A stretch of DNA of 64,000 bases from the NCBI GenBank assembly GCA_025603075.1, contig MU626369.1, forward strand, positions 9,360 to 73,359, in the 5' to 3' direction. Positions 4,242 to 62,273 of this stretch are shown here, piece by piece. The position numbers and the translations under genes are program-made. Origin of the DNA: Neoconidiobolus thromboides FSU 785 (taxonomy: Eukaryota > Fungi > Entomophthoromycota). Under the pieces are notes generated by a model. The model was not told the DNA's origin. It made no database searches and worked only from the letters and a program-made list of their open reading frames with translations. Every line of letters begins with the position of its first letter. Position 1 is the stretch's first letter.

Positions 4242-4338
4242 GTGAATGTATTTTTTTGTTTAAGAATTTTACTAACAATTATTCTACTTAAATAGTGCTT
4301 AAAAAGTGGAAAGCGATGAAATTAAAAAAAATACTCTC
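4242..4338 (+). mobile_element. MITE family 1, copy 1
   Basis: Matches the ~98-bp consensus; AT on both flanks. Confidence 0.85.
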
Positions 4339-4412
4339 ATATATACAAAACCTAATAGCTTAAAACCCAAATAGTTACCATAGCGAAAATTCCTTTATTT
4401 CTTACTACATAT

Positions 4413-4511
4413 GGGGATGTATCTTTTGTTTAAGAATTTTACCAACAATCTTTCCACTCAAATAGCGCTTAAAAAATGGAAAAAGTTATGAAACCAAAAA
4501 AAACATCCCCC
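4413..4511 (+). mobile_element. MITE family 1, copy 2 (near consensus)
   Basis: AT|GGGGATGTAT...AAAAAAACATCCCCC|AT. Confidence 0.9.
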
Positions 4512-4729
4512 ATATGATAATAGATTTAGCTAATTAAATATATGTGTTTTTAATTGAAGATCGTAACTTGATATATTTTGTATTGTTGCTGTAAGCCCTG
4601 CAATATGCAGTATATTCAAGCAGAAAAAATAGTTATTTGTATTTAGCTATAATTAAAGTGGTAGTTTTATTTTACTTTAACTTTTATTTCCAAAAATATA
4701 TCTTTTTGCACATCCATTACTTGATTTTC

Positions 4730-5130
4730 ATATATACTACTTATGACATCTATACACACCTCTTACAAAAAAGTTTGAGCCAAGGAACTTGGTATTTTTA
4801 TTTTGAAAACAGTTAGTTAATGGGTTAAAAGTTGATAGATCAAGTAAAAGTCTTGAAATTAATAATTTTAAGAAGTAAATTGGTTTATATTAACGTTAAA
4901 GCATATCGCTTTTCCAGACTTAGTTGCTTGATTCTTTGTTGTTTGGCAGTATATCTACTCCCTACTTATATATCTTTTTTGAATTTTACCATTAAAGATA
5001 TCTTAAAAATCTTTTTTTACTATGGCCCAATACTACCATATCAAGTCTTTTACATATAATATTTAGACCTTTTGACTGATTTATTATTTTGATCTAAAGT
5101 AGCCCATCAAAGTGGCTATTCATAGCATCA
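4730..5130 (-). mobile_element. Possible decayed non-LTR retrotransposon RT fragment
   Basis: Broken frames give NNKS...YWAIVKKDF*DIFN and, further on, YKPIYFL / NY...YQLLT, which resembles LINE RT KSPG..FW.IV..DL..FN...NYRPISL. There are many stops and frameshifts. Confidence 0.3.
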
Positions 5131-6124
5131 GGATTAGAATTGTATACTTTACTTTTATTGTTAGCTTATTAAATCTTGTACAAATACTTAAATTTAGAAA
5201 ATTTATTCAAAACTGTTTCTATTGTCTTTTTCGAAACATTACATTCTTTTTATATTTTTAGGACTATAAATTGGAATACTAATATGCCTTCTATCTCTAT
5301 ATCCCTTCTGGTCTAGCTACTTTCTATACTATTTTACAATTTATAGAGTGCTAGAGATAGTTTAAATTGAGATATTCAGTTAATGTTTAAGCTATATTAT
5401 GGTGGAAAATTAAGTTTACTTTCAATTGCATAAAAATAAATCAATAATTATAAATTTGTTTTATTTATATAAAAATATTCACTTTTATACAAATAGTGCG
5501 CTAATCTTTATAATGAAATTTTTTTAAAAAAATTATTTTATTTTATTTCTACTTATCATTTTTTGAATAGTTAGAATTTATACATTATCTGATCGAGGCA
5601 GCATGATAGGAATTACTAAAGTGGGTAATGTGGGAAAAGTTATTAGTGACATTGTCCTTCTTTAGTTATGAATAAGTTTTGTTTATCAACTTTTATTATT
5701 ATTAATATATTAAGACACTTTGCCTTCTACTTAAAATCAACGTTCAATTAATTTATATATCAAGTCTCTTATTACTACAACAAAATACTTTTATTTTAAT
5801 TTTATTTTCTATTTTTTAATAATTTGACCATTTGAAATATTAAAACCTGACTAAGATTGTTGAGCATCTGTGATAATTTATACTATTGTTTCAAATTATC
5901 TTTCGTAATTAAACTATCATATTAGCAGTGATTTATTCTTATTTATTTGTATTATTTTATAATTTTAATAAAGTGAATTTTAAATATTATAGAGAAATTC
6001 CAAATAGACATTGTATAAAAGATTTACTAATAATAACCACAACTTTTAAATATTCAAATGAATTTTATTTATAAATGGTTGTAAGTAAACAACAAAATCA
6101 TTCATCTAAAATTATTTAACTACC

Positions 6125-7366
6125 TTAAAGCGGTTTGGCTATCACAGTTTCCAAAAAATAGATAACAGCTGGCGTAAGTTCTTTACCAATTGGAATAATT
6201 CTTTCAGGTGGAAGAACAAACCCATTTGGCGTGTTGGAATCGGCAGCTGGTGATAATTCAATAGTGTATCCATAAGTTTTCTGGTCGTTACCAGCATAGA
6301 ACCAGTCAGATGCGGTACCAGAGCATGCATATAAATCAATAGACCTTTCATTAATGTAAGAAGTACCTGCAACATCAGCAATTTTTTGCTTAATGCCTTC
6401 TCCTAAGACCTTATGTTGTTCTTCATGAGGAGCAAGAGTTTGAGTGTCTCCATAAGGACGAAGAATAAGTTGAGAATAAGAGTGGAAGTCAATAGCTCCT
6501 AAGAAAGGACCTTGAGACTTAAAATAGTTAACGATGGCTTGAGTTTCAGGTTCAGAAGCAGCAAAAGGACCACGGTAAGTATTTGAAAATGGAACAGTGG
6601 AAGCACCTGGACCACCCCATCCATATGGAAAGTTTCGATTAATATCAACACCTATACTACCGCTTACTGAACGGCGGTTTTTACGCCATAAACGGTCACC
6701 CTTCCAAGTGTAGGCATAGCCATCTGGATTAACGACTGGTACAGCAATAATTTCAATTTGATCTAATAAAGATTTAATGGCTGGGTCGCTTTGACGGTTA
6801 GTGATTAAATGATCCAAAACATATTGTAAAGTAGATCCACTGATCCATTCACGAGCATGGATTAAAGATTCAAAGTACACCTTTTTCTTTGGAGTCCTTG
6901 TCGGATTGGTAATATGAATAGCAAATAGATCACGGCCTTGATCAGATTTACCAATAGATGGGACGAATTTAACTGCATCTGAGTTAGATGAAGCTAAAGA
7001 AGAGTACCAAGATTTAATGTCCTCGTACTTATGGTAGTTAGAGAACCAATCGTCATTAGCAGCTTTTGATTCAATTTGTGAAAATGAATCGTAAATTTGA
7101 CTTTGTAAATCTTCAATTAAAACCTTGTATTCTAAAGAGCCACCGCTGACTCTATTTAAGGAAGCTAGTTGAGAAGGAGTAACACGAGCACTAATAAGAT
7201 CTACGCTTTGGCTCCAAACATCAATTTGATCAAGGATTGGATTGATCTTATCATTGGTTTTGAATTGAATAACTTTTTGTCCGGTATAAGTTGCTATAGT
7301 GGATGGACTAGCGAATATTGAAGAAATAGCAGCTAAAGTACCAAAAGCAATAGAAGTGAATTTCAT
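6125..7366 (-). CDS. Secreted zinc carboxypeptidase A/B (M14A), intronless
   Basis: Signal peptide and propeptide; HAREW, RKNRR, DINRNF, DFHSYSQ, GYTIELSP motifs. Confidence 0.95.
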   Translation of the reverse strand: MKFTSIAFGTLAAISSIFASPSTIATYTGQKVIQFKTNDKINPILDQIDVWSQSVDLISARVTPSQLASLNRVSGGSLEYKVLIEDLQSQIYDSFSQIESKAANDDWFSNYHKYEDIKSWYSSLASSNSDAVKFVPSIGKSDQGRDLFAIHITNPTRTPKKKVYFESLIHAREWISGSTLQYVLDHLITNRQSDPAIKSLLDQIEIIAVPVVNPDGYAYTWKGDRLWRKNRRSVSGSIGVDINRNFPYGWGGPGASTVPFSNTYRGPFAASEPETQAIVNYFKSQGPFLGAIDFHSYSQLILRPYGDTQTLAPHEEQHKVLGEGIKQKIADVAGTSYINERSIDLYACSGTASDWFYAGNDQKTYGYTIELSPAADSNTPNGFVLPPERIIPIGKELTPAVIYFLETVIAKPL

Positions 7367-7378
7367 TTTTAAAATTTT

Positions 7379-7452
7379 TTAATAATATTATTAAAAAATA
7401 TTCAAATTAATAAAGGTTTTTTAATTTGAATATTTTTTAATAATATTATTAA
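7379..7452. repeat. Perfect 32-bp inverted repeat with a 10-nt spacer, between the TATA-like box and the ATG of the carboxypeptidase
   Basis: TTAATAATATTATTAAAAAATATTCAAATTAA (7379-7410) and its exact reverse complement (7421-7452). Confidence 0.9.
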
Positions 7453-8035
7453 GCGCTCTTATATTCTTTATATAACTCTCTAATATTTGGTATATTTGGT
7501 TATAATTTTAAATTATATGACCAACTTATAACATGTAGTATACTTTAAACTAAAATAAAAAATATGATTATTTTAAGTAGACTAAATTAGATATAATTAG
7601 CAAATATGTAGTTGGGAATTCTTAATTGGGGTTGTTTTTATTTTATGGTCTTTTTCTTCATCACACGATAGTCTTTTGATTTAATTCATCTATACAATAA
7701 GTGGGTTGTGAGATACGTACTCTTTTTTTTCATCATAAAACAAATCATTATTGATTAAAGTTTCCTTATTTTAAATTTTATTTGGGTATTAGTGCAACTT
7801 GAAGTAATAGCTCTAAACACCAAAACATATATTAATACTGCTTACACTTTTCTCAATTTTAATGTGAATTACTATAAAAAAGTGACTAATTGACCCATCC
7901 TCTTTTACTTAAAATTCACTGATACAATGTATTGATTATGGGCACAAAGTAAACTGCACTGGTCAAATCATTAACATTAATAAATGTAATGATGACGAGT
8001 CACCCAATCTCATTGCTATTTAATTAAATATAAAT

Positions 8036-8257
8036 GGGTAAGTTTAAAAGCTCGATTAAAGAATAAAATTTCTTTCCACTTTTTTTGTCCATCTTCTATA
8101 TAGCGTAAATAGATAATGAACAAAAAAACATTCCCATGTAAAGTAATTTTAAAATTGAACAAAAAAGCAAATATTTCCGTAGTACTTAATGCTTAATTCG
8201 TAACCTTTACTAAAAATCTAAATTAGACAAAAATTGAACCAGGCTTTTAACTAACTC
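8036..8257 (+). mobile_element. MITE family 2, copy A
   Basis: Ends GGGTAAGTTTAAAAGCT / GGCTTTTAACTAACTC; aligns end to end with 52491-52732 (reverse) and 15967-16292. Confidence 0.75.
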
Positions 8258-9839
8258 AATATAAAAATATATTTAAATATGTTGTTTAACCCAATTCAGT
8301 GAGCTAAAAAACAAGCACCTTTGAATAAAGTTAAATAAAATCACAGAAATATCATCCTTTGGAAACATTTAAAAGTATAAAAAGATAGTTAAATATTAGC
8401 CATATTTAATAGTATAAAAATTATAATATATTTTTAAAAATTTCAGCTTATAACTCATTTAATTTAAGCTGTTTTCTCCTATTTTGATTAATTTTACAAA
8501 AATTTTGTTATATACCAATCATATTGTTAAGGCTTTGTCGTTATAACCACAATTTTTTATTAATGTGAAATGCTTACTTTATTTTTTTTAATATAATATT
8601 TACATCAATTTATATTTAAATTGATGTATTTAATTATTTTACTCAAGACGAATTTTTAACCCAATTTAGGCTAATAGATCAATAGCATATACAGTTTTAA
8701 AGTTAAAATTTTTATAAATTTAGTTCCAATGTATTATATGAAGGTGTCTAAATTGGTTTCATTTTTTCATCCAATTTTTAAATATCTTGTATTCTAAAAT
8801 TTTGCTTAAAATTCTATAAAAATAAGTTCTTTATTAATAGCAAAAGTACCTGACATAGTTTTAAACATTCTATTATAATTTATATCGTAACTTAGCAAAA
8901 TTTCTATTAAATTTAATAGAACTTTCCAGATTAGTAAATCTTTTATTAATATAACCTATATATTGATATTAATCAAAATCGTAATATATAAACAAATCCA
9001 TATTTTTATAAAACTCCATTAAGAAATATTTACTATTGACTGCTTTATAGCCAACATTACAAATTCGCTATTAAATAAATAAATAAATTACTTTAATGCT
9101 ATAATTATATTATTAATATATTACTAAGTTGATAAACAGCTACATGGGAGGGAGTGGTTAGTCTTAAAATTACAATCAACTAACTATCTTTATATAATAC
9201 AAGCAATATGATAATAATTTGAGTAATATTAACATTTAACAATCAATTTTTATGAGTTAATAAATCGCTTAGTAAATATTAGAATTTTTAAATTTTATCT
9301 ATTTTTATAAGATAAGCTGGACTGATCTTTTAATTTTTTTATTTCTATGAATTTCATAACTTTGGTTAGAATTATATCACTTTTTTTGATTTATCAAATA
9401 CTGAATAACAGCGTAGTTTATTGTTATGCTTAATAAAATATAGATACTTTTTGATATTAAAAAGTTTTTATATTTTTTTTATATTTTTTAAAAATTGTGT
9501 TTATTTCCTTATTATTAGCAGTTAAGCTATTAGCTTTGTTATATCTACAAACAAAACTATCAGATTTTAAAACTAGTTAACTAATATCTTCTATTTTGCT
9601 TAATGCTTTAAAATATCACCATGTTAGCTCTATGATTGACTATAGCATAATAATCATTCAAGCCGTTGTGCTCTCGAGTTCAGGCACAATCAACCCCAAG
9701 CTTCTATTTTGTTTTTCTATGAGAATCTTTGTCATGTAATTCCGAAGAACATTATCTTTCCGTTCTGATATCCATATTTGCTGAAGTATAAAAGAGATTT
9801 TAGAATATAGTAGCCCGAGACTTTTTAACTGAATTATTC

Positions 9840-10060
9840 CCTGATATCTCGTACATTTAATAAAGTCAATAAGTTTACTTAGTAGTATTTACGTAGATTT
9901 TACATTAGTATTATCTATTCTATTAGTCTTACATAGTATATAGCCTATTACGCGCTATTCTTCATAATTCAAGTCTATCTTAGTCACATAAACTAAGACC
10001 TTTCGACTTACAGTATAGTCTACCAGGCAATAGCTGCTTTTAGCTCCAATCACTGAGTAT
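9840..10060 (-). mobile_element. Possible decayed LINE ORF2 C-terminal (zf-RVT-like) fragment
   Basis: One frame reads KSKGLSL..DRLEL*RIARNRLYT...CKIY...TY*LY*MYEIS. It resembles W..K....K.FLWR..RNRL.T...CxxC...H...C if the stops and Tyr codons derive from C>T/G>A changes. Confidence 0.3.
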
Positions 10061-10141
10061 CAGATTTCACATCTTTTTATATTTTTAATAATAGATTATA
10101 ACATTAATATTTTATCCTTAATTATTTTTGAACAATTTTAT

Positions 10142-10240
10142 GAGGATGTTTTTTTGATCTTATCATTTTTTCCATTTTTCAAAGTGTTATTTAAGTAGAA
10201 TAATCGTTAATAAAATCTTTAAACAAAAAAATACATCCCC
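10142..10240 (-). mobile_element. MITE family 1, copy 3
   Basis: Reverse-orientation match; AT on both flanks. Confidence 0.85.
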
Positions 10241-10673
10241 ATATTGATTTATTTGTATATTAAATCTAGAACTTTTACATTTATCAAAAGAATATACTAA
10301 AGCTATAGCTGATAATAACGCTACTTGTTGGTTTTTATTTTCGTTTCCTTCAAAATATTAATTTTACACATTGATCAATTAAGTTTGTTATTATTAATAG
10401 TAAACTTTGATAATATTCCTTTTCTTTTATTCTATTATAAAATCCTATAAACTTTAGGCTCTTGTAAATAGTTGCCAAAATTGATATAAATGAATTACAA
10501 TGTTCATATAATGTGCCTCTCGCTATTGCATTAAAATTTTTAAAATTCTATTTTGAAGTTTAGTTATAAAAGCTTGTATTGTTTTTATTTTAGTAAAAAA
10601 TAAAGTAATTAAAACAAGTCTTTTAAGTTAATTTTTTTATTTAACTAAGATTTTTAAATTTAAATAATCAAAT

Positions 10674-10769
10674 GAAGATATTTTTTTGATTTCATCATTT
10701 TTTCCATTTTTTAGGCACTATTTGAGTGATAAAGACTGCTTGTAAAATTCTTAAAAAAATACATCCCCC
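10674..10769 (-). mobile_element. MITE family 1, copy 4
   Basis: Reverse-orientation match; AT on both flanks. Confidence 0.85.
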
Positions 10770-11209
10770 ATTATTAAGAATTTATAAATTAACTTGAATC
10801 TTGGATTAAGTTTTAGCTAAGTTCTGAAACCAATTTGAACATCCCATATTTAGTATAAAAGTTTATTACAGTTTGTTAAAAATCTTTAATATAATTAGTC
10901 AAAACAAAATTAATAAAAGTTAAATTTTAGACTAATAATAAAAATTGAAAATATTAATTTATATAATATAAAAGTTAATCTAATAAGATTGAGATTGAAC
11001 TTGGAGATAAATGTATACATCTAAACAACACTAGCAACTTTTTATATTTTTTATATTTTTTATATTTTTTATCGCTACCCAAAGATACTTTATCTTTTGT
11101 TTCACCAAATTAAATTTCTCGTTAAATTAGATTTTATTACTATTCTGTAAATTGCTAGTAGATGTTATAATCACACATTTAGTACATCCCTAATCTAAAA
11201 TTAGTAAAT

Positions 11210-11308
11210 GGGGATGTATTTCTATGTTTAAGAATTTTACTAATAAATTTTCCGCTTAAATAGCACTTAAAAAATGGAAAAAATAATGGAGTCAAAAAAA
11301 ACACTCCC
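11210..11308 (+). mobile_element. MITE family 1, copy 5 (ACACTCCC-end variant)
   Basis: GGGGATGTATT...AAAAAAAACACTCCC. Confidence 0.85.
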
Positions 11309-13226: not shown

Positions 13227-13321
13227 GGGGATGTATTTGTTTGAAAATTTTACTAACAGTTATTCTACTCAAATAGTGCTTGAAAAATGGAAAAAATGAC
13301 AAAATCAAAAAGAATATCCCC
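13227..13321 (+). mobile_element. MITE family 1, copy 6
   Basis: Consensus match; AT on both flanks. Confidence 0.85.
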
Positions 13322-14328
13322 ATATGTAACTTATTAGAGGGGGCATAACTCAAAATAGGAAAAATAAAGTTTTAATTGCTTTATTTCACAAACTTTAGGG
13401 TCTATCAACAAATTATGAAGATTCAACATGAAGTAATAAAATTTGGAGTAAACAGAAGCTTAGATAAATTTGGTCGTTGATAAAAATCAATTGTTTCATG
13501 TAAGAAAAAAAACAAACTTAAATTGCTCTAGGAGTTTGGATAAACCATGATTTCTAAGGATACAGTAAAAATTTATTGAAAGATCACGGTGATATTGATT
13601 GGTTGTATTTTTATAAAAAAATAAAGGACTCGATCGATGTCTAAAGAAATTGCGTAAAATAGGGATAATCATAAACAAGCTATTTTTTTTATGAATGGAG
13701 ATATTTTAAGGAAATATCAAGTTTTTTAAAAATGTGTGTATTGTAGTTTGAAAATATTAAAAACTATTTTATAATACGACCTAAAACTTTGTGTTATCAT
13801 GAAAAATGATATCTTGCCAATATATTATAATTTATCGATATATATTGATATGATTATACGTTGTTTTATAGTAAAATTCAGATCAAAACTACGAAAGTGA
13901 AATCAGTATACCATACAGTTACTAATAGTTACTAAAGTTGATTAATAAATCCAGATTCAATATTACAGAGAAAGGGGATTATAACAGAAAAATTTCAAAA
14001 ACTATAACTAAAAATACTAAGCTTGTAATATAAGGTTAAACCTAATATTCAATTATCATTAACTCTAAGTTGTGACTAAGTAGTATTATCTATTAGACTT
14101 TGTTTTACTTTTAATTTAACATAGAAATTTTAATTATAGATACATCTTTTGTATAATCTAATAATAAGTTCTGATTTAGAGATTTTTAAACAACGTTAAT
14201 CTTAATTTTGATTAAAATGCATTCTAAATTTATCTTTAAATGTAACTTATTGCATAAATAGAAATAAGAATCAAAAAGTATAAATAGTTAAGGATAAGAA
14301 ATTTTTTAAATTATTTATTTATTTTATA

Positions 14329-15120
14329 ATGAACTTGAATAATATAATGTTTAATAATTCCAAAGAGAATCAAGAAAAAAAATTCAAGCCCTTTGGAATG
14401 GAATCCTTTATAGGCCACATTCAAACTGTTAAAGATGCATTACTGCTCTTTGAGGCTGTAAGAAGTAACAACCTAAAGTGCATTGAAAGGAGGCTAAACG
14501 TAGCTGAAAGAAATAACATAAAGTCTGGTGCAACGTTCATATTCGATGAACAACAGTCTGGGTTACAAAGATGGACAGATGGGTATTCGTGGTCAACGTC
14601 AAGAGTAAAAGGCCACTTCTTAGTATATGAACAAAAGAACCAAATGGACCCCTTATTTAAAAAAACAATATCGGTTGTCACAAGAGATAATAAAAAGTAT
14701 TGCTTAGTCAATTATTATTATGGTAGAGATCTAGATAGTAATTGCTTAGTTACTCCAAAAGATTTACAAAGGTTTCAATCATACTCAATTCCAGCTGGAT
14801 TTTATTTCAAGTTCTCCTCTTCTTTAAAAGATGGTGCAAAGTCTTTTAAATTAACTCCATTAAGTGCAAATGATGATAGTGATGTATATACAAAAGAAGC
14901 TATTAAGCGTCCTAATCCTTTTGATTTACTTTTTAACCACGATAATATGACAACAACTTCTTCAATATCTACATTGCATCACTTCCCTAGCACCTCAGTA
15001 CCCCAAATCAACTATGAGAATACTTACCATGATACAAATACTTATAAGTCATACCCTACTTCTAGTTCTATGAAGTTACCAGGTATACAGTCATTACTTT
15101 TACGTGGTGATTATAATTAA
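14329..15120 (+). CDS. Gti1/Pac2 (WOPR) family transcription factor
   Basis: MESFIGHI.T..DALLLFEA, RRLNVAER..IKSGATFIFDE, RWTDGYSWSTSR...FLVY, LFKKTISV, LVNYY motifs. Confidence 0.93.
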   Translation: MNLNNIMFNNSKENQEKKFKPFGMESFIGHIQTVKDALLLFEAVRSNNLKCIERRLNVAERNNIKSGATFIFDEQQSGLQRWTDGYSWSTSRVKGHFLVYEQKNQMDPLFKKTISVVTRDNKKYCLVNYYYGRDLDSNCLVTPKDLQRFQSYSIPAGFYFKFSSSLKDGAKSFKLTPLSANDDSDVYTKEAIKRPNPFDLLFNHDNMTTTSSISTLHHFPSTSVPQINYENTYHDTNTYKSYPTSSSMKLPGIQSLLLRGDYN

Positions 15121-15966
15121 ATAAAATTTGCTTTAACTTTAAATTGCCTTATTAGTATGTTTGATTTTAATAAATTTTAACGATTCAAAAATCTTTAATT
15201 TCTAGAATAATTACATGTTTTATAAAAGGTTTAACTTATTACAACAATTCAATTAAAAATGAATTTTAATTCCTGTTAAATGGGAATGTAATAATTATCA
15301 TGCTTTTATTACAGAAAATTCGATATTTATGAAATTTATGGTTATTGCATGTTAAAATTAAGAATTTGAAAAATCTCGTAAACGTGAGGTGTTAAAAATT
15401 GATGTTTAAAATAAGGTAAATAGATACAAACGTTAGAAAATATCAAATTATATTAGTGGACATGGCTTTTTAGATGTCTTTTTTGAGCAATTTAAATCAT
15501 CTATTCACTTGTTTTTAATCCCCACTGATAAAAATGAAAATCTGAGGGTAATTACTAAAAATAGGGAACTCCGTACACACTCCCTTAATTAAAAGGATGA
15601 TTAAATTAATATTATGACCCATTTTAATCTGGTATAAATCCTTATTTTTAATACCCTATTTCTATTTGATAAGAAAATTTACTTTTTTAGACAACAGTCC
15701 TCTACTGCTGAAAAAGTTTATGCCCGCTCCAATATTTTAAGGGATATCTGTTTACATTTCTAATCTTTATTTTATTATAAAACGGTCATTATCTTTTAAC
15801 CTATTTCAATAGCATAAATAAGGCTTATATTCCTCACCAATCCAATTTATTATTTTTTACTAACTTGAAACTTAATAGAACAGTCTGATTGTTATAATTA
15901 GAAAGAATTCTTAATTTCTAAGTTTTAAAATAAAGATTTAAAATAAACTATAATTACTAATTACAT

Positions 15967-16292
15967 AGCTAAATTTAAAGTCTAGTTAAAATTGAAATCT
16001 CTTATATCACTTTTTGTCTATTTTTATATAGCGCAAAATTTAAAAAAGAAATATATAAATTTGAAAAAAAATGTTACAATATTGAGGATGTATTTTTTGT
16101 TTAGGAATTTTATTAACAATATCTCCGCTCAAATAACGCTTAAAAAATGGAAAAGTAATGAAACCAAAAAAATATCCTCACTATTAACTTTAAAATTGAG
16201 CAAAGTGGTAATACTGATGACATTTGTGCTTAATTTAAATCTTTGATAACTCAAAATTGAATAAAAATTGAGCTTTAGGTTTAAACTAACCT
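15967..16292 (+). mobile_element. MITE family 2, copy C, interrupted by a family-1 MITE
   Basis: The left part (CACTTTTTGTCTATTTTTATATAGCG) and right part (TAACTTTAAAATTGAGC...AAAAATTGAGC...TTTAAACTAACC) align with copies A and B. Confidence 0.7.
16084..16179 (+). mobile_element. MITE family 1, copy 7 (nested in family-2 copy C)
   Basis: Consensus match; flanks are degenerate. Confidence 0.85.
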
Positions 16293-21106: not shown

Positions 21107-21983
21107 GGTTTTTAATACAAAATATGGTAAATAGCTATTAAATAAATAATAGTTGTCATGGATTAACCCTTTATTTATATATTTTGAGTTTAGTTTTTAA
21201 TTAAATGTATTTTTATGCTAGTTTCAAAGTTAACTTCTTTTGGTCTATTTTAATTTGGGGAGTATACTTAGGGTTTTAATTGGTAAGATAATTAACAAAC
21301 TTTTATCATAGGTATTTAATTTAAACCTAATGGAAATTAGCTTTTATTAATTCAAATCATTATTGATTTTCTAATCTCTCAATATTATATGTTGGAATTG
21401 TAATATATTTTCAAAGGGGACCTTTAATTTATTCAATGTAATGTTTTAACCATAGGTTTATAGAAACGTGATTTTTATATCTATATGTCTATGTCCTTAA
21501 CTTTAAAATATTTACCCCAAGGCCTTAAATTTTTAAAACTGGGACTTAATTTAAAATTGTAAACTCCTTTTTTACACCTATGATTTATAAATTAAGGGTA
21601 GTAAAGTCATAACTTTATATATTTTAAAGTAATAGTATATTTTTAAGTATTTAAAGCAACATGTGTTTGAGACAGTTTAACTTTTGAACTGAGAAGATCC
21701 TATTCAACTTGATATCACTTTCGTTATAACACTTTACAGTTTTTCTATGTACACAGTCTATTCTTAGTACTTTAGGTTCTGAAATAGGTCTTTATAGCTA
21801 AAGTAATCAAAAATCTATGTTGAACCGTTTTTAATCAACAAGAATTTTCTATTAATCTTAAAAGAAATAATTATGCCAAATATTGCTATCAATACATATT
21901 ATATGAAAATGGTTTTCTATTTCAGTATTTAATCCTCTTTTTAAGTTTCTTAAAATTTAAGTTATTATTAGGTATTCCTATAT

Positions 21984-22079
21984 GGAGTTTTTTTTGGTTT
22001 CATCACTTTCCCAATTTTTTAAGCGCTATTTGAGCAGAAAGATTACTAATAAAATCTTTGAATAAAAAAATAGATACTC
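21984..22079 (-). mobile_element. MITE family 1, copy 8
   Basis: Reverse-orientation match with degenerate ends. Confidence 0.8.
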
Positions 22080-33452: not shown

Positions 33453-33552
33453 GGGGGATGTATTTTTATGTTTAAGAATTTTACTAGCAACCTTTCCACC
33501 TAAATAGCGCTTAAAAGATGGAAAAAGTGATGAAGCCCAAAAAAACATTCTC
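33453..33552 (+). mobile_element. MITE family 1, copy 9
   Basis: Consensus match; AT on both flanks. Confidence 0.88.
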
Positions 33553-36890: not shown

Positions 36891-36988
36891 GGGGATGTAT
36901 TTTTGTATTTGAGAATTTTACTAACAAATTTTCCATTTAAATAGCGCTTAAAAGTGGAAAAAATAATGAAGCCAAAAAGAACGCTCCC
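36891..36988 (+). mobile_element. MITE family 1, copy 10
   Basis: AAAT|GGGG...CTCCC|ATTT. Confidence 0.88.
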
Positions 36989-37194
36989 ATTTATTAACTT
37001 AACTATTAATAATTTAAGTAGTATTAACATTTGACAATTGATTTTTGTTATTTAATAAATTACTTGCTTACTAAATATTAAAACTTTCAAACTTATTATC
37101 ATTTTTTTAAAATAAGCTAGGGCTAATTTTTTGATTTTTTACAAATTTCATAGCTCTAATTAAAATTGTATTACTTTTTTTTAATCTAGTATAT

Positions 37195-37290
37195 GTGCAT
37201 GTTTTTTTGATTTCATTACTTTTTCATTTTTAAGCGCTATTTGAGTGGAAAGATTGTTAGTAAAATTCTTAAACAAAAAAATACATCCCT
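37195..37290 (-). mobile_element. MITE family 1, copy 11
   Basis: Reverse-orientation match. Confidence 0.85.
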
Positions 37291-37873: not shown

Positions 37874-39373
37874 ATGAAATTAGTTGAATTACCTACCGAA
37901 GTAATAGCTCAAATATTATCTGAGCTACACAATACAAAAGATTTATATAACTGTTTATTGACATGTAAATTATTAAATAATGTAGCTAAAGTTGAAGAGA
38001 TATGGAAAGAAAGGATAAGACGGGACTATAGTTTGTTATCTTATGTATCTGAACAGAGCCCAATATTTCGTAAAAGTAAGTTTAAGCAGCTTTACAAGGC
38101 TCTTTCAAATCCAGAGGTGTTTGTATGGGGATCAACCGAAAATGGTAGGAGTGGAATCGATAATGAAACTTTGGATAGTTTGGACGGTATGTATAGTGAA
38201 CTGCATTCGCCCTGTTGGTTAAAAGAAATGTCAAAAAAAGGAGTTTCGAGTATTGTATGTGGAGGATTTATGATGCTAGCATTGACCCATGACAAAAAGG
38301 TATATTTTTGGGGTACATTTAATGGTTCAGTTTATGCATATCCGTATAGTAAAGGAAAAAGTACTCCTATCCAATTAAACGTATTCCCAGCTAATGAAAA
38401 AATTGAACAGTTAAGCTCAGGAAGATATCACGCATTGGCACTAACAGAAGATGGTTTAGTTTATCAGATAGATAACCCAGATACGCTTGCTTGCCTAATT
38501 GAGCTCTCGAACGATAGTAGCCCAATTATACAAATAGCAGCTGGTTTTAGCTCTAATTTAGTATTAACTAAAGATAATAAGATATACTATTGGAATTATG
38601 AATATAGTATCAAAAGCAAAAGCTACTTTGAGCTTGTGTATACTTTAAATGAAAATGAAAAGTTTATTAAGATAGCAGCAGGTGATAAATTTAGTTTAGC
38701 ACTGACAAACCAAGGCCGAGTCATTTATTGGGCAACTTTTCAACTTAGAGAGCCTGAAACTGAAAGTATAGGTGAACCAGTAAGTAAGTGGGAGTTAACC
38801 CATCAAAACAGCTTAGATGGTAAAGTATTGAATCAAGTGGCAGATTTCAAAGTTAGTCATATCACTGCTCAATTCGAGAATTTTGCAGTATTTTCAGAAA
38901 ATCAAGAATTATGGATTGGTATAATAAGAATGGAAGGTGGAATTGAAGGGGATGAACCGTACTTATCTATTGAAATCAATTTGCGTGAAGACTTAGGTAA
39001 AGGTAAGCCAATCCAAGTTAGTTTTGGTGACTGGCACACCGCTGTGCTTATGGAGGAAGGTAGACTATATACGTGGGGTGAACATGGACTTGGCCATGGA
39101 CAGCCTACTAGCAGGTTTAACCCTACTACTGTAGTAGAGCCTAAATTAGTGTCTTATTTTGGTGATGACTATTTTGTATTTTATACAGCATGTGCGGGCT
39201 GGCATACAGCTGCACTTGCAGTTAATCTTAGAGATCTAAATGCTACTCCTCCGGAGTATCCTATCCAAGAAAGAACCCAACAAGTTAATAGATTAGCTGA
39301 CCTCCTTACACAAATAGTCAACAGCTTCGTCCAATTGAGGGGTGAAGTGACCTTTCAATCAGGTCGACATTAA
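37874..39373 (+). CDS. F-box protein with RCC1 repeats (Saf1/Pof9-like SCF adaptor)
   Basis: N-terminal LVELPTEVIAQIL F-box; repeats VFVWGS, QLSSGRYHALAL, KIAAGDKFSLAL, VSFGDWHTAVL, ACAGWHTAAL. Confidence 0.9.
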   Translation: MKLVELPTEVIAQILSELHNTKDLYNCLLTCKLLNNVAKVEEIWKERIRRDYSLLSYVSEQSPIFRKSKFKQLYKALSNPEVFVWGSTENGRSGIDNETLDSLDGMYSELHSPCWLKEMSKKGVSSIVCGGFMMLALTHDKKVYFWGTFNGSVYAYPYSKGKSTPIQLNVFPANEKIEQLSSGRYHALALTEDGLVYQIDNPDTLACLIELSNDSSPIIQIAAGFSSNLVLTKDNKIYYWNYEYSIKSKSYFELVYTLNENEKFIKIAAGDKFSLALTNQGRVIYWATFQLREPETESIGEPVSKWELTHQNSLDGKVLNQVADFKVSHITAQFENFAVFSENQELWIGIIRMEGGIEGDEPYLSIEINLREDLGKGKPIQVSFGDWHTAVLMEEGRLYTWGEHGLGHGQPTSRFNPTTVVEPKLVSYFGDDYFVFYTACAGWHTAALAVNLRDLNATPPEYPIQERTQQVNRLADLLTQIVNSFVQLRGEVTFQSGRH

Positions 39374-39800: not shown

Positions 39801-39894
39801 AGGAATGTAATTGTGTTTAAGAATTTTACTAACAGTATTTCCGCTCAAATAGTGCTTAAAAGATGGAAAAAGCAATGAAGCAAAAAAAACTTCC
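39801..39894 (+). mobile_element. MITE family 1, copy 12
   Basis: Consensus match; AT on both flanks. Confidence 0.85.
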
Positions 39895-40359
39895 ATATGT
39901 TTTAAATAGCTTGGTGTCCAATGTTAGATAAATACCGCTTTGCTGAAATGAATTTTTTAAATTTCTCAAACTTTACTTAATGACTTATCTGATTCTTACA
40001 GACAGTATCAAATCGAGGCTAGCTTGTATAAATCAATTCAACTTTTTATTGTAAAATTTAATATATTAGCACAGTTTTTAATAAAAATCATTGTAGTTTT
40101 TTATCTTAAATTTAATCATAATCCGAGTTTTTGTTTCGAATTGTAGCTTTTATTTTCAACACTGTTAGTCTTTTTATAATTGGTATCAGCGCAGGATATG
40201 AGCAAATAGTCGTATAAACATGAGTAAAAATACTGATATAATTTGAAAATTGTATAAATTATCCCAACTGGGCAACGAATTGAAGTATTAAACCTTAAAA
40301 TATGAATAAATTAAGTTGATATTTTAAATAAATAGTTTAATAAAAGAAAAATAACTATT

Positions 40360-45957: not shown

Positions 45958-46055
45958 GGGGATGTATTTTTGTGTTTAAGAGTTTGACTAATAATCTTTT
46001 CACTCAAATAATGTTTAGAAATGGAAAAAGTGATGAAATCAAAAAAAACATCCTC
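45958..46055 (+). mobile_element. MITE family 1, copy 13
   Basis: Consensus match. Confidence 0.87.
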
Positions 46056-46310
46056 ATACAGTTAATACGTTTTGTCTTTTTTAATCTGGAGATATTTCTT
46101 TTAAATAGAAGTTAAAAGCTATATCCAATTAAACACCTTGAATTTCATATTAAAATAATTGAACTTCAAATTAAAAACAAAAAGCTACCTTTAATTTCAA
46201 ATTGCTCAAAGGAGCTAATAAACTAAGTGAAAAAATTATTGGTAGTTGAAATGAAAGAGATAAGGGATATTTTAAAAAAAATTATATTATAGTATTAAAA
46301 GAAAGAAATA

Positions 46311-46400
46311 GAGACTATTTTTTGGTTTCATCACTTTTTCCATTTTTAAGCACTGTTTGAACGGAAAGATTGTTAGTAAAATTTTAAAAAATACATCTCC
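46311..46400 (-). mobile_element. MITE family 1, copy 14
   Basis: Reverse-orientation match with degenerate ends. Confidence 0.8.
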
Positions 46401-46613: not shown

Positions 46614-46712
46614 GGGAATGTATTTTTGTGTTTATGAATCCTACTAACAATCTTTTCGTTTAAATAGCACTTAAAAATGAAAAAAGTAATGAAGCCAAAA
46701 AAAAACATCCTC
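46614..46712 (+). mobile_element. MITE family 1, copy 15
   Basis: Consensus match. Confidence 0.87.
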
Positions 46713-51891: not shown

Positions 51892-52490
51892 ATTTGAGTA
51901 CTATATAACTATTTAATTAACGATTAAAAAATTAAAAGATTATAAGAAGATCAAAGGAAAAGGAAGAAAATAAGACTTGTCTATTATTTTTTAATATAGA
52001 TGATGGTCATAATAGACTTGAATAGTATTATCATAATTCTTATTAACCTTATTATAAAAATTACTATTTTTATAGAGATTTTTATTTATACTAAAGGATA
52101 GAAAGACACAATGTTACTTCTAACCAATAAAAGTTAAAAGATTGGATTGTTTATTAAGTTTTATAATTATTAGAGAATAAATGTTTATTTGTATCCCTTG
52201 ATTATAATGTAAAATTGCAATTCATTATTCTTAATAAAGATAAATTATTGATAAGTATAAATTATTATTATATAATATAGATTTAATGAAGTAAACCCAT
52301 ATAAAGACATATAATACTTACCTGATTATTAACTATTTTTTTCATAGATGTTAGTGATTGCGCAAATATTACGCATCTTCATACTGGTTCACTTTATCAA
52401 ATCCATATTATAAAAAGTTTTAAACCATTTTTTATAAAAATTCTTGTTAGATTGAATATAAAAATAAAAGAATAATAGAATTTTAAAGTT

Positions 52491-52732
52491 GAGTTAGTTT
52501 AAAAGCTTGGTTCAATTTTTGTTCAATTTTGATTTTTAGCAAAACTTGCAGATTAAGCTCTAAAAGCTGGAAAAAGTCTTATTTTTTTGTTTGATTTTAA
52601 AATAATTTATATTGGGACGTTTTTTGTACAATTTTACCTGAAAGTTTTTTACAAACTATAACATAGAAAATGAACAAAAGAAGAAAATTGGAAATTTTAA
52701 TTTTAATTTTAATCAAGCTTTTAAACTTATCT
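52491..52732 (-). mobile_element. MITE family 2, copy B
   Basis: Terminal inverted repeats GAGTTAGTTTAAAAGCTTG / CAAGCTTTTAAACTTATCT; aligns with 8036-8257. Confidence 0.78.
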
Positions 52733-52913
52733 ATATATAAAAAACCCATTATATAAAGTTGAGTCTAATTATACAAACAAGAATATACCAGTCATAGTAT
52801 CCCAGAAGAATTTTTTTCTAAAATAAAACTATATATTTATATTATCACTTACAATTTTTTCAAAACATAAAAATTTAGAAAAGTGGTCAAGGTAAATTTT
52901 ATTATTATTATAT

Positions 52914-53012
52914 GTGAGTGTTTTTTTTGACTTCATTATTTTTTCCATTTTTTAAGCACTATTTGAGCGGAAAATTTGGTAGTAAAGTTCTTAAACACAA
53001 AAATACATCCTC
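52914..53012 (-). mobile_element. MITE family 1, copy 16
   Basis: Reverse-orientation match; AT on both flanks; shares variants with copy 5. Confidence 0.9.
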
Positions 53013-53174: not shown

Positions 53175-54281
53175 CTAAACTAATAGCTGACTAAAGTCAT
53201 CATTGAAATACCCTTTTGCAATTTTACTACTTTCTTTTAAAATTTCCTTACGAACATTTCTAAGGATAATTATCTTTTCATTAAACTCAGCACTTTGATA
53301 CTCACTAAGAATTATTTGGTCAGCAACCGGTCCTAAAATTGTATTAGTAGTAGCCACCAAAATCAAGTCTTCATATGGAAGTGCTGAAATACCAGTAGTT
53401 ATGGCAGTTCTCATATAAGTTAAAACTTTGCTATCAGTATCCATTTTTAAAGGATTGGCTAATGGTAAGTTGGTAAGACATGAGGCCAATGTACCAGCTT
53501 GATTAAAATCCTTATTTGATGCACAAAAATAACCACGATCACGATCATAACTAGTACCCCAATAACCACAACCAGATTGAATTTCTGAATTTGGAATTAA
53601 CTTGAAGCAATTACTATAATTATATTCCATAGCAGCGGTTTGCAGTACATTATTAGCTAATAAACAAATTTTATCAATACCTAATACATATTCATTAGAT
53701 TGAATTGTTTGTGCCTCCTTATTGTATAATTCAGTATTGTTTAGTATCTTACTAACTATTTTCTCAGTCATCTTAATTTGAAAAACTTGACGATAATTTT
53801 CATCATCAGGATGTAAGTTGTTCATTGGAATAATAATAGATCTTAAACCTTGCCTCAAATCTACTGAGATATAATTTGAGCTTCCAATAATAGGGGAAAT
53901 AAATAGATACTCTTTATTACTACTGGAAGATGTAAGTTCCATTATATTTAAATTCTTCATTTCTGAAATTAAATTAGTAGTTTTGACGCGAAAGTCATTG
54001 GTACAATATTGACGACAAGTTAAACAACAAGATTTAGTATCACGTAAACAACTCTTTCCTTCATACCACTTTCTTGAGGCCTCATAACTATCCTTTCCTG
54101 CTAGTGGTAACCAGTGATGTAACTGTTGACAATTACGTTGGTACTTTGGTGATATATCAACCTCGAACCATACCATATCACTATTAACTTTGTAGCATGT
54201 CTTATCTAAGTAAGTTAATCCAAGTGGGACTTGACCCAAAGCAACCGAAATAAAAAGTAGGAATGATAAAACAATAAACAT
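53175..54281 (-). CDS. Secreted Cys-rich hypothetical protein (368 aa), intronless
   Basis: Signal peptide MFIVLSFLLFISVALG and a long open frame; no family recognised. Confidence 0.8.
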   Translation of the reverse strand: MFIVLSFLLFISVALGQVPLGLTYLDKTCYKVNSDMVWFEVDISPKYQRNCQQLHHWLPLAGKDSYEASRKWYEGKSCLRDTKSCCLTCRQYCTNDFRVKTTNLISEMKNLNIMELTSSSSNKEYLFISPIIGSSNYISVDLRQGLRSIIIPMNNLHPDDENYRQVFQIKMTEKIVSKILNNTELYNKEAQTIQSNEYVLGIDKICLLANNVLQTAAMEYNYSNCFKLIPNSEIQSGCGYWGTSYDRDRGYFCASNKDFNQAGTLASCLTNLPLANPLKMDTDSKVLTYMRTAITTGISALPYEDLILVATTNTILGPVADQIILSEYQSAEFNEKIIILRNVRKEILKESSKIAKGYFNDDFSQLLV

Positions 54282-56561: not shown

Positions 56562-57548
56562 TTACTGTTCCAATTTCGATAAACTAATAATACCCCCACA
56601 AGTACAATAAAAACCATCCGAAAGGTCCGGTAATAAAGAATCCTCAAATTGTGGGTTGATTTTTTTAGATTGAGATAGGAATTGATTACATCTAATTAAA
56701 ATGGTAAATAACAAGTAGTCATAAATATGAGAACGAATTAGACTTACCTTCCACAAACCAATTGGTTATAAATAGCATATATTCTCTTTTTAGAATACAT
56801 CGAAGGCGTGACTAATATTAGAAATTAATAAATCATATTATTATTGTTACTATGTAAACTTACCTTTTACTTTAATTTCACTATTGTTTTTATTAACTAG
56901 TTTATTACTAGTATTGATACTAGTTAATGGAATAATTTCATTTGGTTGTATTTTACTAGCATTAATAGCTAAATCAATTAATTTTTTATCTTGCTGTTGA
57001 TGATTTAAATTCGTATTGTGTCGTTGTTGCTGTTTCTCCTCTATACTTTTAATCCTTTTATTTAAAATCCCGATATCCTCTCTCTGTTGTTTATTATTAT
57101 TGTTAATAGTATGATAATTAGTACCTGGGATAAATTGCTTTGATTTTAAGCTCATATGAATAATAAATTTAACTAGATTTAATTCTACTGTATCTTGTTT
57201 TTCAATAAATCCTTCTATTTTTCTCTTTTTATTCAATAAACTACCTTTTTCATTACCAATAAAAAATAGCAACCAATTAGCTCTTCCATTTAATAAACCA
57301 TCTAAATTATTTTTTAATTTTTCACTCTTTAAATTTAATTCCATTGCTTTTAATAATATTTCTTGATACCACCTGCTATCTTTATGTTTATTAAATATTA
57401 TTACATTTGAATATTTAATTCTTTCATTAATAACTTTTTCATCATAATAACCATTTAATTGTTTAATTAGATATTTAAAAAATAGCAAATTATGTTGAGA
57501 TCCAGTTGGTAATTTATTACGTTGTAAATTCCAATAATTTAGCCATTC

Positions 57549-57608
<60 letters not shown>

Positions 57609-59714
57609 TAATTCTGACATAAATTTATCTAATGGGTAAACAATCATTATCAGATTTTCAATTAATTTCCTTACCATAGGATGACTTAATATTCCATAAT
57701 TCATATATAATTGATGAGCTAATGCATTATTATTATTATTTATTGTTCGATAATGATTATAACAATCTCCAAATAATACTATTAAATAGTTATAGAAGAA
57801 GATTGAAATTGTAGTTAAATGGCATAATTGATCATTTAAATAAATTTGATTATTTTCTTCTGGATCTGAAAATTCAGACTGTAATATCTCTAAACAATAC
57901 CTCAATTTAGTTATTGCTATTAAGCTATTAATTTGTTTGTAATATTTAGTTTGAAATTGTCGATATATCAATAGTTGTAATTTATTAAATTTATCAAATT
58001 CAATTGTTATTTCATTATTTTGATTAATATTATTTTTATATATTTGTAGTATTGAATCCAATTTAACTAAAAAATCATTTAGTTTCATTTCATTTAAATC
58101 CGATCCTTGTGCTTTTATTGGTTTTGGATGATATAAACTAATACTAACTAAATCAGATAAATCATTTTCATTGGCTAATGCTGATATATAATAAGGTATA
58201 AAACTATTTAATACATTATTATTATTATTGATTTCAATCAAATTAAATAATGAATATAAATTAATCAATAAGATATTATTTTCTGATGTAATTATTAATG
58301 AAATACATTGATTAGGTGATAATTCAAACAATTTAATATATCCTAATGGATTATTATTATTATTATTATATTTTGATATCATCGAATATTGATTTAATTC
58401 CATTAAATTATTAAATTCCGATATACTTTCATTTAGTTGATTCCAAATTTCCACTTTACCACTTAAAAAGAATAATATCTTTTTATTAAATTTATTTATT
58501 ATTTCCATCCTTATTACTTGATCCATTTGATACTCTTTTTTATTGATTCTACTATTTATGTTTTCTATTGACTAATTTAACATTAATATAAAAATTTAAC
58601 TAATATAATGAACAATATATAATAATATTACCTCTAAACTCATTAACTCCATTTGGGTAAACTTAAAATTAAAACAATGACTTATAAACGAACTCGATGA
58701 GTTCTTATAATTAACAATATAATTAACTTCGATTTGATCTAAATACCAATTCACTACTAAATCGCACTTATCCTGATCCATGGTCATCTCATTCTCATTT
58801 AATATCAAACAACTTAAATCCAATACTAATAAATTAATATTTTGTAATTGATTTTCTTTCATAAATAAATTTAAATCCATTTCAAAACTAATAAAATAAA
58901 ACTTATTCACTTTATCCTTAACTATAATACAAACAAATTCATCCTTTAAAAACACCATTTTTGTTAAATTCATTTCAACACCTTCTAATTGAGGTAAGTA
59001 TTGCTTTAGATCTATTAACTTGATACCCATCCTATCGTTAGAATCACAAGTCATCACTCCGAGCTCCCACCCTTGCATCAAAAATACCAGTGCAAATGCA
59101 CCTTCTTCATATTTAGGCCCCAAAAATTCTTGCGCTATTATATCTCCCGATTTTACATCGAAATTGCTGTATTCTTTCCTCTTTTTTATGAACTGATAAC
59201 ACTGAATTTTAGAATTCATTTTGATTGATTTTAATAATAATAATCCATTGCCTTTTTCCAATAAATAAACTGATAATTGGTGATTTTGATCATAAGTGAT
59301 TACATATCTTCCTGTTGGATCCCAGCACATAAAATCCATTTCACCGCTCATTCCTACCTCCTCAATACTTTCTCCCCCTACTTTCTCCTCGGTCTCTCCT
59401 TCCTCTTCCCTATAAATTAACACTTGCGAATTATTTAAAAACCAACGCGAAGTCAATTCCATACTATTATCTCCTTCCTCAGTATAATTTATTGCTTCAA
59501 AATTCAATATATTTAATTTGGGATGAAACTCCATTCCATCATTGGTCACTGTATCTACCAACTTGGTGGTAGAAAATAATAATGGATCGATACCGCTGTT
59601 GATGAGTATATTTTTAGTAGACCAAGAGAGATGCGGTATCTTTTTATCCAATTTATTTTGAGGGGTTTGAAGGGTTATTGTTGTTGCTATCGTTGTCAAA
59701 GGGGGTATGCTCAT
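56562..59714 (-). CDS. MED16: Mediator subunit 16 (Sin4)-like, 3 introns
   Basis: LSWSTKNIL and MCWDPTGRYVITYD propeller motifs. Intron 58572-58631 joins the two long ORFs in frame, and two further small introns give the C-terminal VCGRCNQ...YCTCGG Cys motif. Confidence 0.72.
57548..57610. repeat. (ATT)n microsatellite encoding poly-Asn in MED16
   Basis: Uninterrupted TTA/ATT run. Confidence 0.9.
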
Positions 59715-60316
59715 CTTTTTTGTGTTGTTGATTGGAAGTTATTGCTTTAAAAAAATGCCTACAAAAAAAGGACTGAATTCGTTCAAAGGATTTAGCTAAA
59801 TAGATGATGATTTCAACGAATTTGGATTGGTTCAATAAAAATTAAATTCGGAGTCAATGGAACGAAAGTTGTTTGAAATTAAAGCAAGATTTTTTGGTTA
59901 AAAAATTGAATAGGAATAAAGTAATGTTTTTTGAGGAAATTTAAATTGAATGTTTTTAATTATTTAATCAATTTTTATACATCTGTAATGTTGTGGTCCA
60001 AATCGGTTGATTATGTCATCTTTTGGTATTTTCCTACTTTATTTTCTTAATGAAATGTTCAACTCTACAACAATATTACACTCGATTATAAGTGAAAGAT
60101 ATAAAGAATTTATTCATGATAAAGAAATTTATTTAATAATCCTTCAATGTATTTATACTGGTTGGGTTGCTTATGATAATAACAGTTACACTGTTATTAT
60201 CATATAAAGTAATGAATGATTTATAGAATAGTAATTATTATAATCGAAATATATTGCTAGCATAGTATAGAACAATAACGCATTTAAAGTAAAAGACTAA
60301 GCTGGAAAGCTTATAT

Positions 60317-60414
60317 GGGGATGTATTTTTTTTGTCTAAGAGCTTTAGCTAACAATCTTTCCACCTAAATAGCGCTTAAAAATGGAAAAAGTAATGAAAC
60401 CAAAAAACATCCCT
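60317..60414 (+). mobile_element. MITE family 1, copy 17
   Basis: Consensus match; AT on both flanks. Confidence 0.88.
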
Positions 60415-61082
60415 ATATGGTGATTTAGAAACTGTAATGCATAGTTTTACAAAATCTAAAAGGTATAAAATTAGCTGTGATTTTCTTAAGTCAAAATATT
60501 TGGCCATTTTTTATAGTGAAAGTTGGAAACTATATAATTAATATTTGAAAAACGTATCATATGTTATTATTTTATGATGCAAAAATGAACACACAATTTA
60601 ATAGTTGCTTGTTAATAATTTGATTCAATAAAAAAATATTTTATAATTAGCGTTTAAAATTTTACAAAATACATATTGTTTTAGCTTTATAAGCTTAATA
60701 TAAATTATTTGTTAATTAAAAATATTAACTTTAGCTACTATAAAATTACAGTAAAAATTAATTTAAGTCAATTTAACATTAATATATAATTTATAAATGA
60801 TTTAAAAATGAGTATAGTTAAACTGTCATTTTTTAATAATTTATTCAGTTTAAAAAAAGTTGATAACCGTTATATTTTATAAAAATTGAGCAGAAAATTA
60901 AAATCTTCTTACAATAAAACCATGTGTCTATAAAAATAAGTTGAATACCACATTGAGTAAACAAAAAAAATGTGAAGATGATAATCTAATTTACTTTTTG
61001 AAAAAGAGATAGTATATAATAAAACCAAAGTATGATAAAAGTAAAGTAATAAACTTAAATTTATAGTTAAATTCCAAAAACA

Positions 61083-62078
61083 ATGACAATTAAATCATAT
61101 ATCTTTACCCTTCTTGTTGTTACTTTAGTATCAAGTACCCCCATCCCAGCTAATAAATCTGGGCTTGATGGCTTATTATCCAATTTACTAGGTGGTAAAC
61201 AAGATACTCAAACGATTCAATTTATTACTCAAAATAAAGCTCCTGCTCCCGCTGCTGTTGCTGTGGATAAAGTTGAAAAATTTGAAGAAATTAGAGAAAA
61301 TTATAGTAAACATAATGGACATAATGGACATAATGGACATGACAAATATGGTGAGTATTATCATGGTTCAGATTATGATATGGATGATTATGGTGGTGAT
61401 GAGTATGATAATTATGATGGGAAATATAATAATGACTATGGCAAAAATAACTATAGTAAAGACAATTATAGTGACAATTACATCAGCGATTATAATTCAT
61501 ACAATAAAAAGGATTTATATAAAAGAAACGAATATGACTCTTATAAAAGTGGCTACCAGACTTTAGATTATTCAAAGGACAATTACTCCAATAAAGTTAA
61601 TAATTATAAAAAAGATGAGTATAGCAATGGATATGAAAAGATAACTGATAATTACAAAAAGGATGATTACTCTAAGAAAGATAATTACTCTAAAAAGGAT
61701 GATTACTCTAATAAAGACAACTATTCTAGTAAAGACAGTTACAATAATAAAGCTAATGATTATAAAAAATTAGAATACAATAATGTATATGAGAAGATAG
61801 CCAACGATTATAATAAAAAAACCAATTACAACTCAGATAAGAAAGACAATTATTCCAATGGCAAAAAGATGGAGTATAATAGTAAGGAATATAATGATAA
61901 AAAGTTTGACTACAGCAAAGATATTTATTCTAATAATAAAAAGACTGATTACAGTAATGGATACAACAAAATAACAGACAACTACAATAACAGCAGAATG
62001 AGTTACTCCAAAGATGATATAGATTACAGTAATGGTTACGAAAAGAAAGCTGATGATTATAAAAACAAGTCATACTAA
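61083..62078 (+). CDS. Secreted low-complexity repeat protein rich in K/D/Y/N/S
   Basis: Signal peptide MTIKSYIFTLLVVTLVSS; repeats KKDDYS/KKDNYS and YSNGYEKITDNY. Confidence 0.85.
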   Translation: MTIKSYIFTLLVVTLVSSTPIPANKSGLDGLLSNLLGGKQDTQTIQFITQNKAPAPAAVAVDKVEKFEEIRENYSKHNGHNGHNGHDKYGEYYHGSDYDMDDYGGDEYDNYDGKYNNDYGKNNYSKDNYSDNYISDYNSYNKKDLYKRNEYDSYKSGYQTLDYSKDNYSNKVNNYKKDEYSNGYEKITDNYKKDDYSKKDNYSKKDDYSNKDNYSSKDSYNNKANDYKKLEYNNVYEKIANDYNKKTNYNSDKKDNYSNGKKMEYNSKEYNDKKFDYSKDIYSNNKKTDYSNGYNKITDNYNNSRMSYSKDDIDYSNGYEKKADDYKNKSY

Positions 62079-62174
62079 GCTTGACTGTCGTTGACTTTAT
62101 TTATTACTTTTTAAATATGTCGTATTCATTCTTTTTTTTAGCTTTAATAAAGTTTATCATTTTAATTATTATAT

Positions 62175-62273
62175 GGGGATGTATTTTTGTATTTAAGAAT
62201 TTTACTAATAATTTTTCCACTCAAATAGCGTTTAAAAGATGGAAAAAGTTATGAAGCCAAAAAAAACACTCCC
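62175..62273 (+). mobile_element. MITE family 1, copy 18
   Basis: ATAT|GGGGATGT...ACACTCCC|ATAT. Confidence 0.9.

Follow-up and report, generated by a model that had tools for sequence, protein, structure and literature searches.

The window, as we call the whole stretch of DNA analyzed here, comprises 64,000 nt of contig MU626369.1 from the assembly GCA_025603075.1 of Neoconidiobolus thromboides FSU 785 (positions 9360–73359). It has a GC content of 26% and codes for eukaryotic F-box/RCC1 proteins, MFS transporters, M14 carboxypeptidase, and adenylation-reductase enzymes, between which a short repeat occurs in many copies. This repeat is almost certainly a miniature inverted-repeat transposable element (MITE), i.e., a non-autonomous class II element, because it is short and non-coding, carries terminal inverted repeats (TIRs) and duplicated flanks, is dispersed in high copy number, and shows signs of movement. 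An earlier note on the same DNA had listed 18 copies in both orientations, and an nhmmer profile made from these copies recovered exactly 18 in the window, 12 on the plus strand and six on the minus strand. The 5′-terminal 23 nt of the consensus given in that note matched the window ten times, compared to no match in 100 shuffles, and the 14-nt terminus was found 29 times at an expectation of 2.3.

Alignment of the copies (alignment A1) yielded a consensus of 99 bp with the ends GGGGATGT...ACATCCCC, whose inverted repeats match perfectly over the first eight bases, in 13 of 14 positions, and in 17 of 20 positions. The previous description as a unit of ~98 bp with imperfect TIRs of ~14 bp was thus accurate. 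The element is non-coding and contains no open reading frame (ORF), and those ORFs that cross individual copies are incidental. The copies diverge from the consensus by 12% on average (range 4–20%), and pairwise identity averages 81.5% across the family. The ratio of transitions to transversions among the copies is 4.1, with C-to-T as the most frequent change. Among 58 aligned copies, C-to-T amounted to 0.21 per site and copy versus 0.12 for G-to-A, and the 3′ end CCTC was about as frequent as CCCC; subfamilies or a mutation bias may account for these two features. No description of the family was found in the literature searched (Repbase and Dfam were not part of the search).

The survey was extended to eight further loci (L002–L009, 159 kb) on other contigs of the same genome, which were reached via MFS paralogs. 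They contained 49 more copies, resulting in a total of 67 copies in 223 kb on nine contigs. This corresponds to 0.30 copies per kb, or about one per 3.3 kb, and to 2.9% of the sampled DNA, which supports the previously suggested high copy number of probably thousands genome-wide. According to the NCBI gene calls, none of 56 copies lies within a gene range (introns included), although genes make up 44% of that sequence, and the genes of the window are equally free of copies, as had been claimed. With respect to the nearest gene, 27 of the 56 copies have the same and 29 the opposite orientation, and 30 are located upstream and 26 downstream. Copies cluster strongly in some intergenic gaps of locus L003, which contains 16 of them in 21.6 kb, including seven within 2.1 kb of one intergenic region (L003:4256–6381).

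The clearest trace of movement is a pair of copies on different contigs, L003:19252–19350 and L005:13843–13941, which are 100% identical over ATAT, the 99-bp element, and ATAT. Their identity stops exactly at ATAT, and the surrounding DNA is unrelated. Because the two identical copies sit in unrelated DNA, they reveal both recent transposition and the extent of the mobile unit; the pair apparently derives from a source copy that differs from the consensus. Pattern scans of metagenome and viral collections gave no match to the family. We also searched for orthologous contigs of other strains via the proteins of the window, each of which was either a singleton in the protein collection or not contained in it.

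The flanks were evaluated for 58 near-full copies (116 flanks) from the window and the additional loci, using right flanks shuffled among the copies as the null model. On the left, 34 copies have the tetranucleotide ATAT, five have AAAT, and three have ATTT, while 30 copies have ATAT on the right, at a background of 1.4% of the genome positions for ATAT. ATAT is present on both sides of 24 copies (eight of the 18 in the window), which is uninformative because a duplication and an extended inverted repeat look alike there. However, seven copies carry perfect direct tetranucleotides that are not palindromic (AAAT three times; ATAA, TAAT, AGAT, and ATTT once each), compared to 0.66 expected, and this number was reached in none of 20,000 shuffles. 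An eighth direct pair, ATTT/ATTT, was recognized by eye at 46309–46400 of the window. Inverted flank pairs were observed once at an expectation of 0.67, and left and right flanks are identical over 4 bp in 31 copies and over 5 bp in only one. Because of these three counts, the flanks represent a direct duplication of at most 4 bp and are not part of the TIRs. The "mirrored" flanks AAAT..ATTT described before are thereby reduced to a single case among 58 copies, which is about what chance provides.

As to the length of the duplication, the dinucleotides touching the left and right ends differ in all seven informative copies while the tetranucleotides are identical, which contradicts the 2-bp AT duplication proposed in the earlier note. 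Its statement that AT adjoins both sides of 11 of the 18 window copies holds as a pattern, but the count is about ten. The inner two bases are certainly duplicated, and eight copies have a duplicated inner dinucleotide other than TA (AA, TT, or GA), compared to 1.2 expected. The duplication very probably extends over 4 bp rather than these inner two bases only, since, with only 2 bp duplicated, a rare transversion in the end base of the element would have to coincide with a rare target base in both ATAA/ATAA and TAAT/TAAT. Outer bases deviating from the consensus were shared between both flanks in three copies, compared to 0.9 expected (P = 0.06).

A partner enzyme was sought among the 19 ORFs of the window with at least 150 aa, which contained no transposase domain and, in particular, no DDE_Tnp_4, THAP, or YqaJ domain. 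The earlier note's statement that no transposase is visible thus holds, but this speaks for the window only. A search for solo termini or long elements in the window and the additional loci only yielded other short families and no long element. Pfam holds no model for Sola transposases (PMC5751038).

Taking these observations together, the best explanation is a MITE mobilized by a Sola2-type transposase with a 4-bp AWWT duplication, to which we assign a probability of about 0.68. The mobilizing enzyme itself is probably a Sola2-type DDD transposase, as suggested by the footprint and by termini that show a weak resemblance. The transposases of Sola elements belong to the DDD enzymes, and each of the three groups reportedly makes 4-bp duplications (Bao et al. 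2009). The Sola2 families of dictyostelids have inverted ends of 12–22 bp and AT-rich 4-bp duplications of the type AWWT (ATAT, AAAT, ATTT) (PMC3627910). The MITE would then be derived by deletion from a cut-and-paste DNA transposon and have no coding capacity. The transposase acting on it would be encoded at another place in the genome, bind the TIRs of the GGGGATGT type, and excise the element, which would be reinserted at AT-only tetranucleotides (AWWT, mostly ATAT) after cleavage with a 4-bp stagger, with the tetranucleotide being duplicated by the subsequent repair.

Several points weigh against this interpretation. Neither the window nor the 159-kb sample contains a transposase of any kind, so that the link of the family to Sola2 is drawn from the footprint. 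The comparison of the ends with those of the Sola2 element DFa-2 shows two to three mismatches, whereas the Repbase criterion allows at most one in the first 11 bases. The outer two duplicated bases are supported at P ~0.06 only, and a 2-bp duplication of WW by an element that has T...A as its ends and lands between A and T would produce the same strings at AWWT targets and also identical empty sites. No empty site was recovered from the sequence at hand: among paralogous sites in the 223 kb, only low-complexity matches cross a junction, and a duplicated 3′ region of an MFS gene as well as the 180-bp and 490-bp repeats described below did not provide one either.

As no transposase was seen, the element may belong to another or an undescribed superfamily with a 4-bp duplication, either a piggyBac- or Kolobok-like one using ATAT for TTAA or a Ginger- or Academ-like one. 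We regard this as unlikely, although the AT-only and mostly palindromic 4-bp target recalls a TTAA-type specificity. The tetranucleotide TTAA, which piggyBac and Kolobok duplicate, occurs in none of the 116 flanks, the observed spectrum with ATAT prevailing over AAAT and ATTT is exactly the published one of Sola2, and the termini start with G-R-G as in the DFa elements of that group. Still less credible is an element of 101 bp (T-GGGG...CCCC-A) of the Stowaway/Tc1/mariner-like or another 2-bp type, which duplicates 2 bp, usually TA, in an A..T context. Apart from producing the same strings at AWWT targets, such an element would explain three copies with a single mismatch (GTAT/ATAT, AAAT/AAAC, and ATAT/ATAA) without invoking mutations. 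However, the eight copies with duplicated AA, TT, or GA break the strict TA rule of Tc1/mariner, the pairs ATAA/ATAA and TAAT/TAAT would have to arise by the matching transversions discussed above, and the shuffle test leans towards a duplication of the outer bases.

The remaining explanations are all very improbable. The earlier note had assigned the family to ISL2EU, with a 2-bp AT duplication abutting GGGG...CCCC, and such duplications are indeed made by ISL2EU (PMC4122938). This assignment is not supported, even though AT directly borders both ends of about ten window copies, since this AT is simply part of ATAT, the proximal dinucleotides differ within identical tetranucleotides, and none of the 19 window ORFs of at least 150 aa has the DDE_Tnp_4, THAP, or YqaJ domains of ISL2EU. 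An insertion without any duplication into pre-existing tandem octamers, as known from Spy, would have a plausible AT-rich target in ATAT|ATAT and would agree with the lack of a recovered empty site, but it would require targets such as AGATAGAT, TAATTAAT, and ATAAATAA, and the combination AAAT/ATTT that is typical of Spy is present in only one of 58. A non-mobile cis-regulatory sequence of the host or a gene for a small structured RNA would fit the strictly intergenic position, often less than 1 kb from genes. Yet the family shows no bias in strand or side relative to genes, has no match in Rfam, and forms no conserved RNA structure (five pairs in the consensus at −0.02 kcal/mol), which, together with its absence from genes, makes a role of this kind very unlikely. 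Inverted ends with duplicated flanks, the identical copies in unrelated DNA, and the lack of any copy in 21.6 kb of Entomophthora muscae argue in the same direction.

The individual copies of the window are distributed as follows. Two plus-strand copies with ATAT on both sides lie close together at 4242–4338 (68 bits in nhmmer) and 4413–4511; the latter differs by 5% from the consensus, scores 90 bits, and has an extra C at its 3′ end. They are followed by two minus-strand copies, one at 10142–10240 with the flanks ATAT/ATAA and one at 10674–10768, which has an internal deletion of 5 bp and unclear flanks (AATG or TAAT on one side, ATTT on the other). On the plus strand, the copy at 11210–11308 shows the direct, non-palindromic flanks AAAT/AAAT, that at 13227–13321 is flanked by ATAT/ATAT, and that at 16084–16179 has the degraded flanks TATT/ACTA. 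The minus-strand copy at 21981–22079 (ATGT/ATAT) precedes the plus-strand copy at 33454–33552, which carries ATAT with an additional G on the left and ATAT on the right and reaches the top score of the window with 93 bits. The sole pair of inverted-type flanks (AAAT/ATTT) belongs to the plus-strand copy at 36891–36988, which is followed by a minus-strand copy with ATAC/ATAT at 37195–37290. A plus-strand copy with ATAT/ATAT is located between two convergent genes (39801–39896), and three copies are grouped at 45958–46055 (plus strand, GTAC/ATAC), 46309–46400 (minus strand, with a 7-bp deletion and the ATTT/ATTT pair read in the alignment), and 46614–46712 (plus strand, ATTT/ATAT). The last three all have the flanks ATAT/ATAT: one on the minus strand at 52914–53012, ~160 bp downstream of the ORF at 53175–54281, and two on the plus strand at 60317–60414 between divergent ORFs and at 62175–62273, 58 bp from a tRNA-Pro gene (62331–62402, minus strand).

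Some of these copies are associated with other repeats. A non-coding repeat of ~490 bp with 80–88% identity occurs at 9611–10101 of the window, L009:2340–2830, and L009:8331–8567, and a 99-bp MITE is present next to all three copies, each time after the repeat and in the same relative orientation; in the window, this is the copy at 10142–10240. At L009:8093–8671, two inverted MITEs with 95.7% identity enclose the core of this repeat and may form a composite unit. A 180-bp repeat with 76% identity is found at 9212–9387 without an adjoining MITE and at 37007–37181, exactly between the inverted MITEs at 36891–36988 and 37195–37290. A second MITE-like family of ~277 bp was detected at L004:8648–8925 and L003:20331–20553. 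Its ends, GGGAATGT...ATATCCCC, are related, its left side is flanked by ATAT, and its interior shows self-complementarity; it has no copy in the window. A third short family of ~270 bp is represented at 8029–8273 and 52474–52739 of the window and at L005:19308–19571, and its copy at 8029–8273 contains the MITE-like end GGGAATGTTTTTTT on the minus strand (8122–8135).

Several neighboring genes are duplicated or decayed. The minus strand of the window carries a decayed F-box/RCC1 pseudogene at 3168–3902, which has 40–50% protein identity to residues 213–458 of the product of the gene at 37874–39373. The similarity breaks off at 3902 and does not reach the MITEs at 4242 and 4413, so that disruption of this pseudogene by a MITE cannot be shown, and its comparison with the intact paralog did not yield an empty site. 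The 5′ part of the M14 carboxypeptidase gene and its upstream region (6994–7778) are duplicated at 64000–63259 with 82% and 73% identity; the duplicate represents a second M14 carboxypeptidase paralog, located at the contig end and truncated by the window boundary. In locus L004, the 3′ end of an MFS gene (3396–3544) is duplicated 850 bp downstream (4245–4395), and the interval between the two copies contains a full MITE as well as a partial one. Locus L005 contains two paralogous genes resembling fungal-specific transcription factors (838–2286 and 14266–16015; atlas score 0.97) and a decayed third copy at about 17.1–17.3 kb. A MITE is present 325 bp upstream of the second of these genes in the same orientation. 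Unannotated ORF runs in L005 were considered as a possible transposase relic, but were rejected as a decayed paralog of the transcription factors.

In summary, we are dealing with a real, abundant, and recently active MITE, which is most likely of the Sola2 type and has an AWWT duplication that most likely spans 4 bp. It represents the main repeat of a compact, AT-rich genome and needs to be masked in annotation, promoter analysis, and the evaluation of other repeat findings. The identical copies hint at a transposition system that was active recently. If the link to Sola2 is true, the family would be among the very few fungal records of this group, which was found only once in a survey of NCBI fungal genomes, in Aspergillus flavus (PMC5751038). 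Beyond its value for annotation, as a record, and as a sign of activity, it is an ordinary selfish element. A more far-reaching scenario, which we consider improbable, would be a still-active and perhaps horizontally acquired Sola2 system in an early-diverging insect-pathogenic fungus, a setting from which the group is hardly recorded. Its MITEs would make up ~3% of the DNA and might already be wired into host regulation, e.g., as copies upstream of transcription-factor genes or as composites with host DNA enclosed by two inverted MITEs.

Compared to known systems, the family shares the palindromic, AT-only 4-bp target with piggyBac and Kolobok elements, but this target is ATAT and never TTAA, and the ends are GGGG...CCCC instead of CCC...GGG. 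MITEs of the Stowaway/Tc1-mariner type, e.g., the fungal mimp elements, belong to a similar size class with short inverted ends and an intergenic position. The family described here resembles them in these traits and in the central TA of most targets, but differs by the non-TA inner dinucleotides duplicated in eight copies and by flank identity over 4 bp. ISL2EU elements, which are related to PIF/Harbinger and IS5, likewise use AT-rich targets with AT beside the element, but they duplicate 2 bp, typically AT, while PIF and IS5 duplicate 3 bp and Spy makes no duplication (PMC4122938); the direct repeat observed here has 4 bp. With Spy, the family has an AT-rich, symmetric-looking insertion context in common, but Spy inserts between AAA and TTT (PMC4122938), whereas the MITE is flanked by direct repeats, including non-palindromic ones. 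The described Sola2 families DFa and PPa (Bao and Jurka 2013, PMC3627910) differ in that the MITE has only 99 bp, is non-coding, and comes with no transposase in view, and the host is a zoopagomycete fungus, while Sola2 was recorded once in the fungal survey (PMC5751038). The start of PPa-1 also differs from the MITE terminus, whereas that of DFa-2, gagcatttatttt, matches GRGGATGTATTTT of the MITE in 10–11 of 14 positions, a suggestive similarity that stays below the Repbase criterion for termini. Common to both sides are short imperfect inverted ends, with the G-R-G start shared between the MITE and the DFa families, AT-rich host genomes, and a 4-bp AWWT duplication with the same spectrum of ATAT, AAAT, and ATTT.

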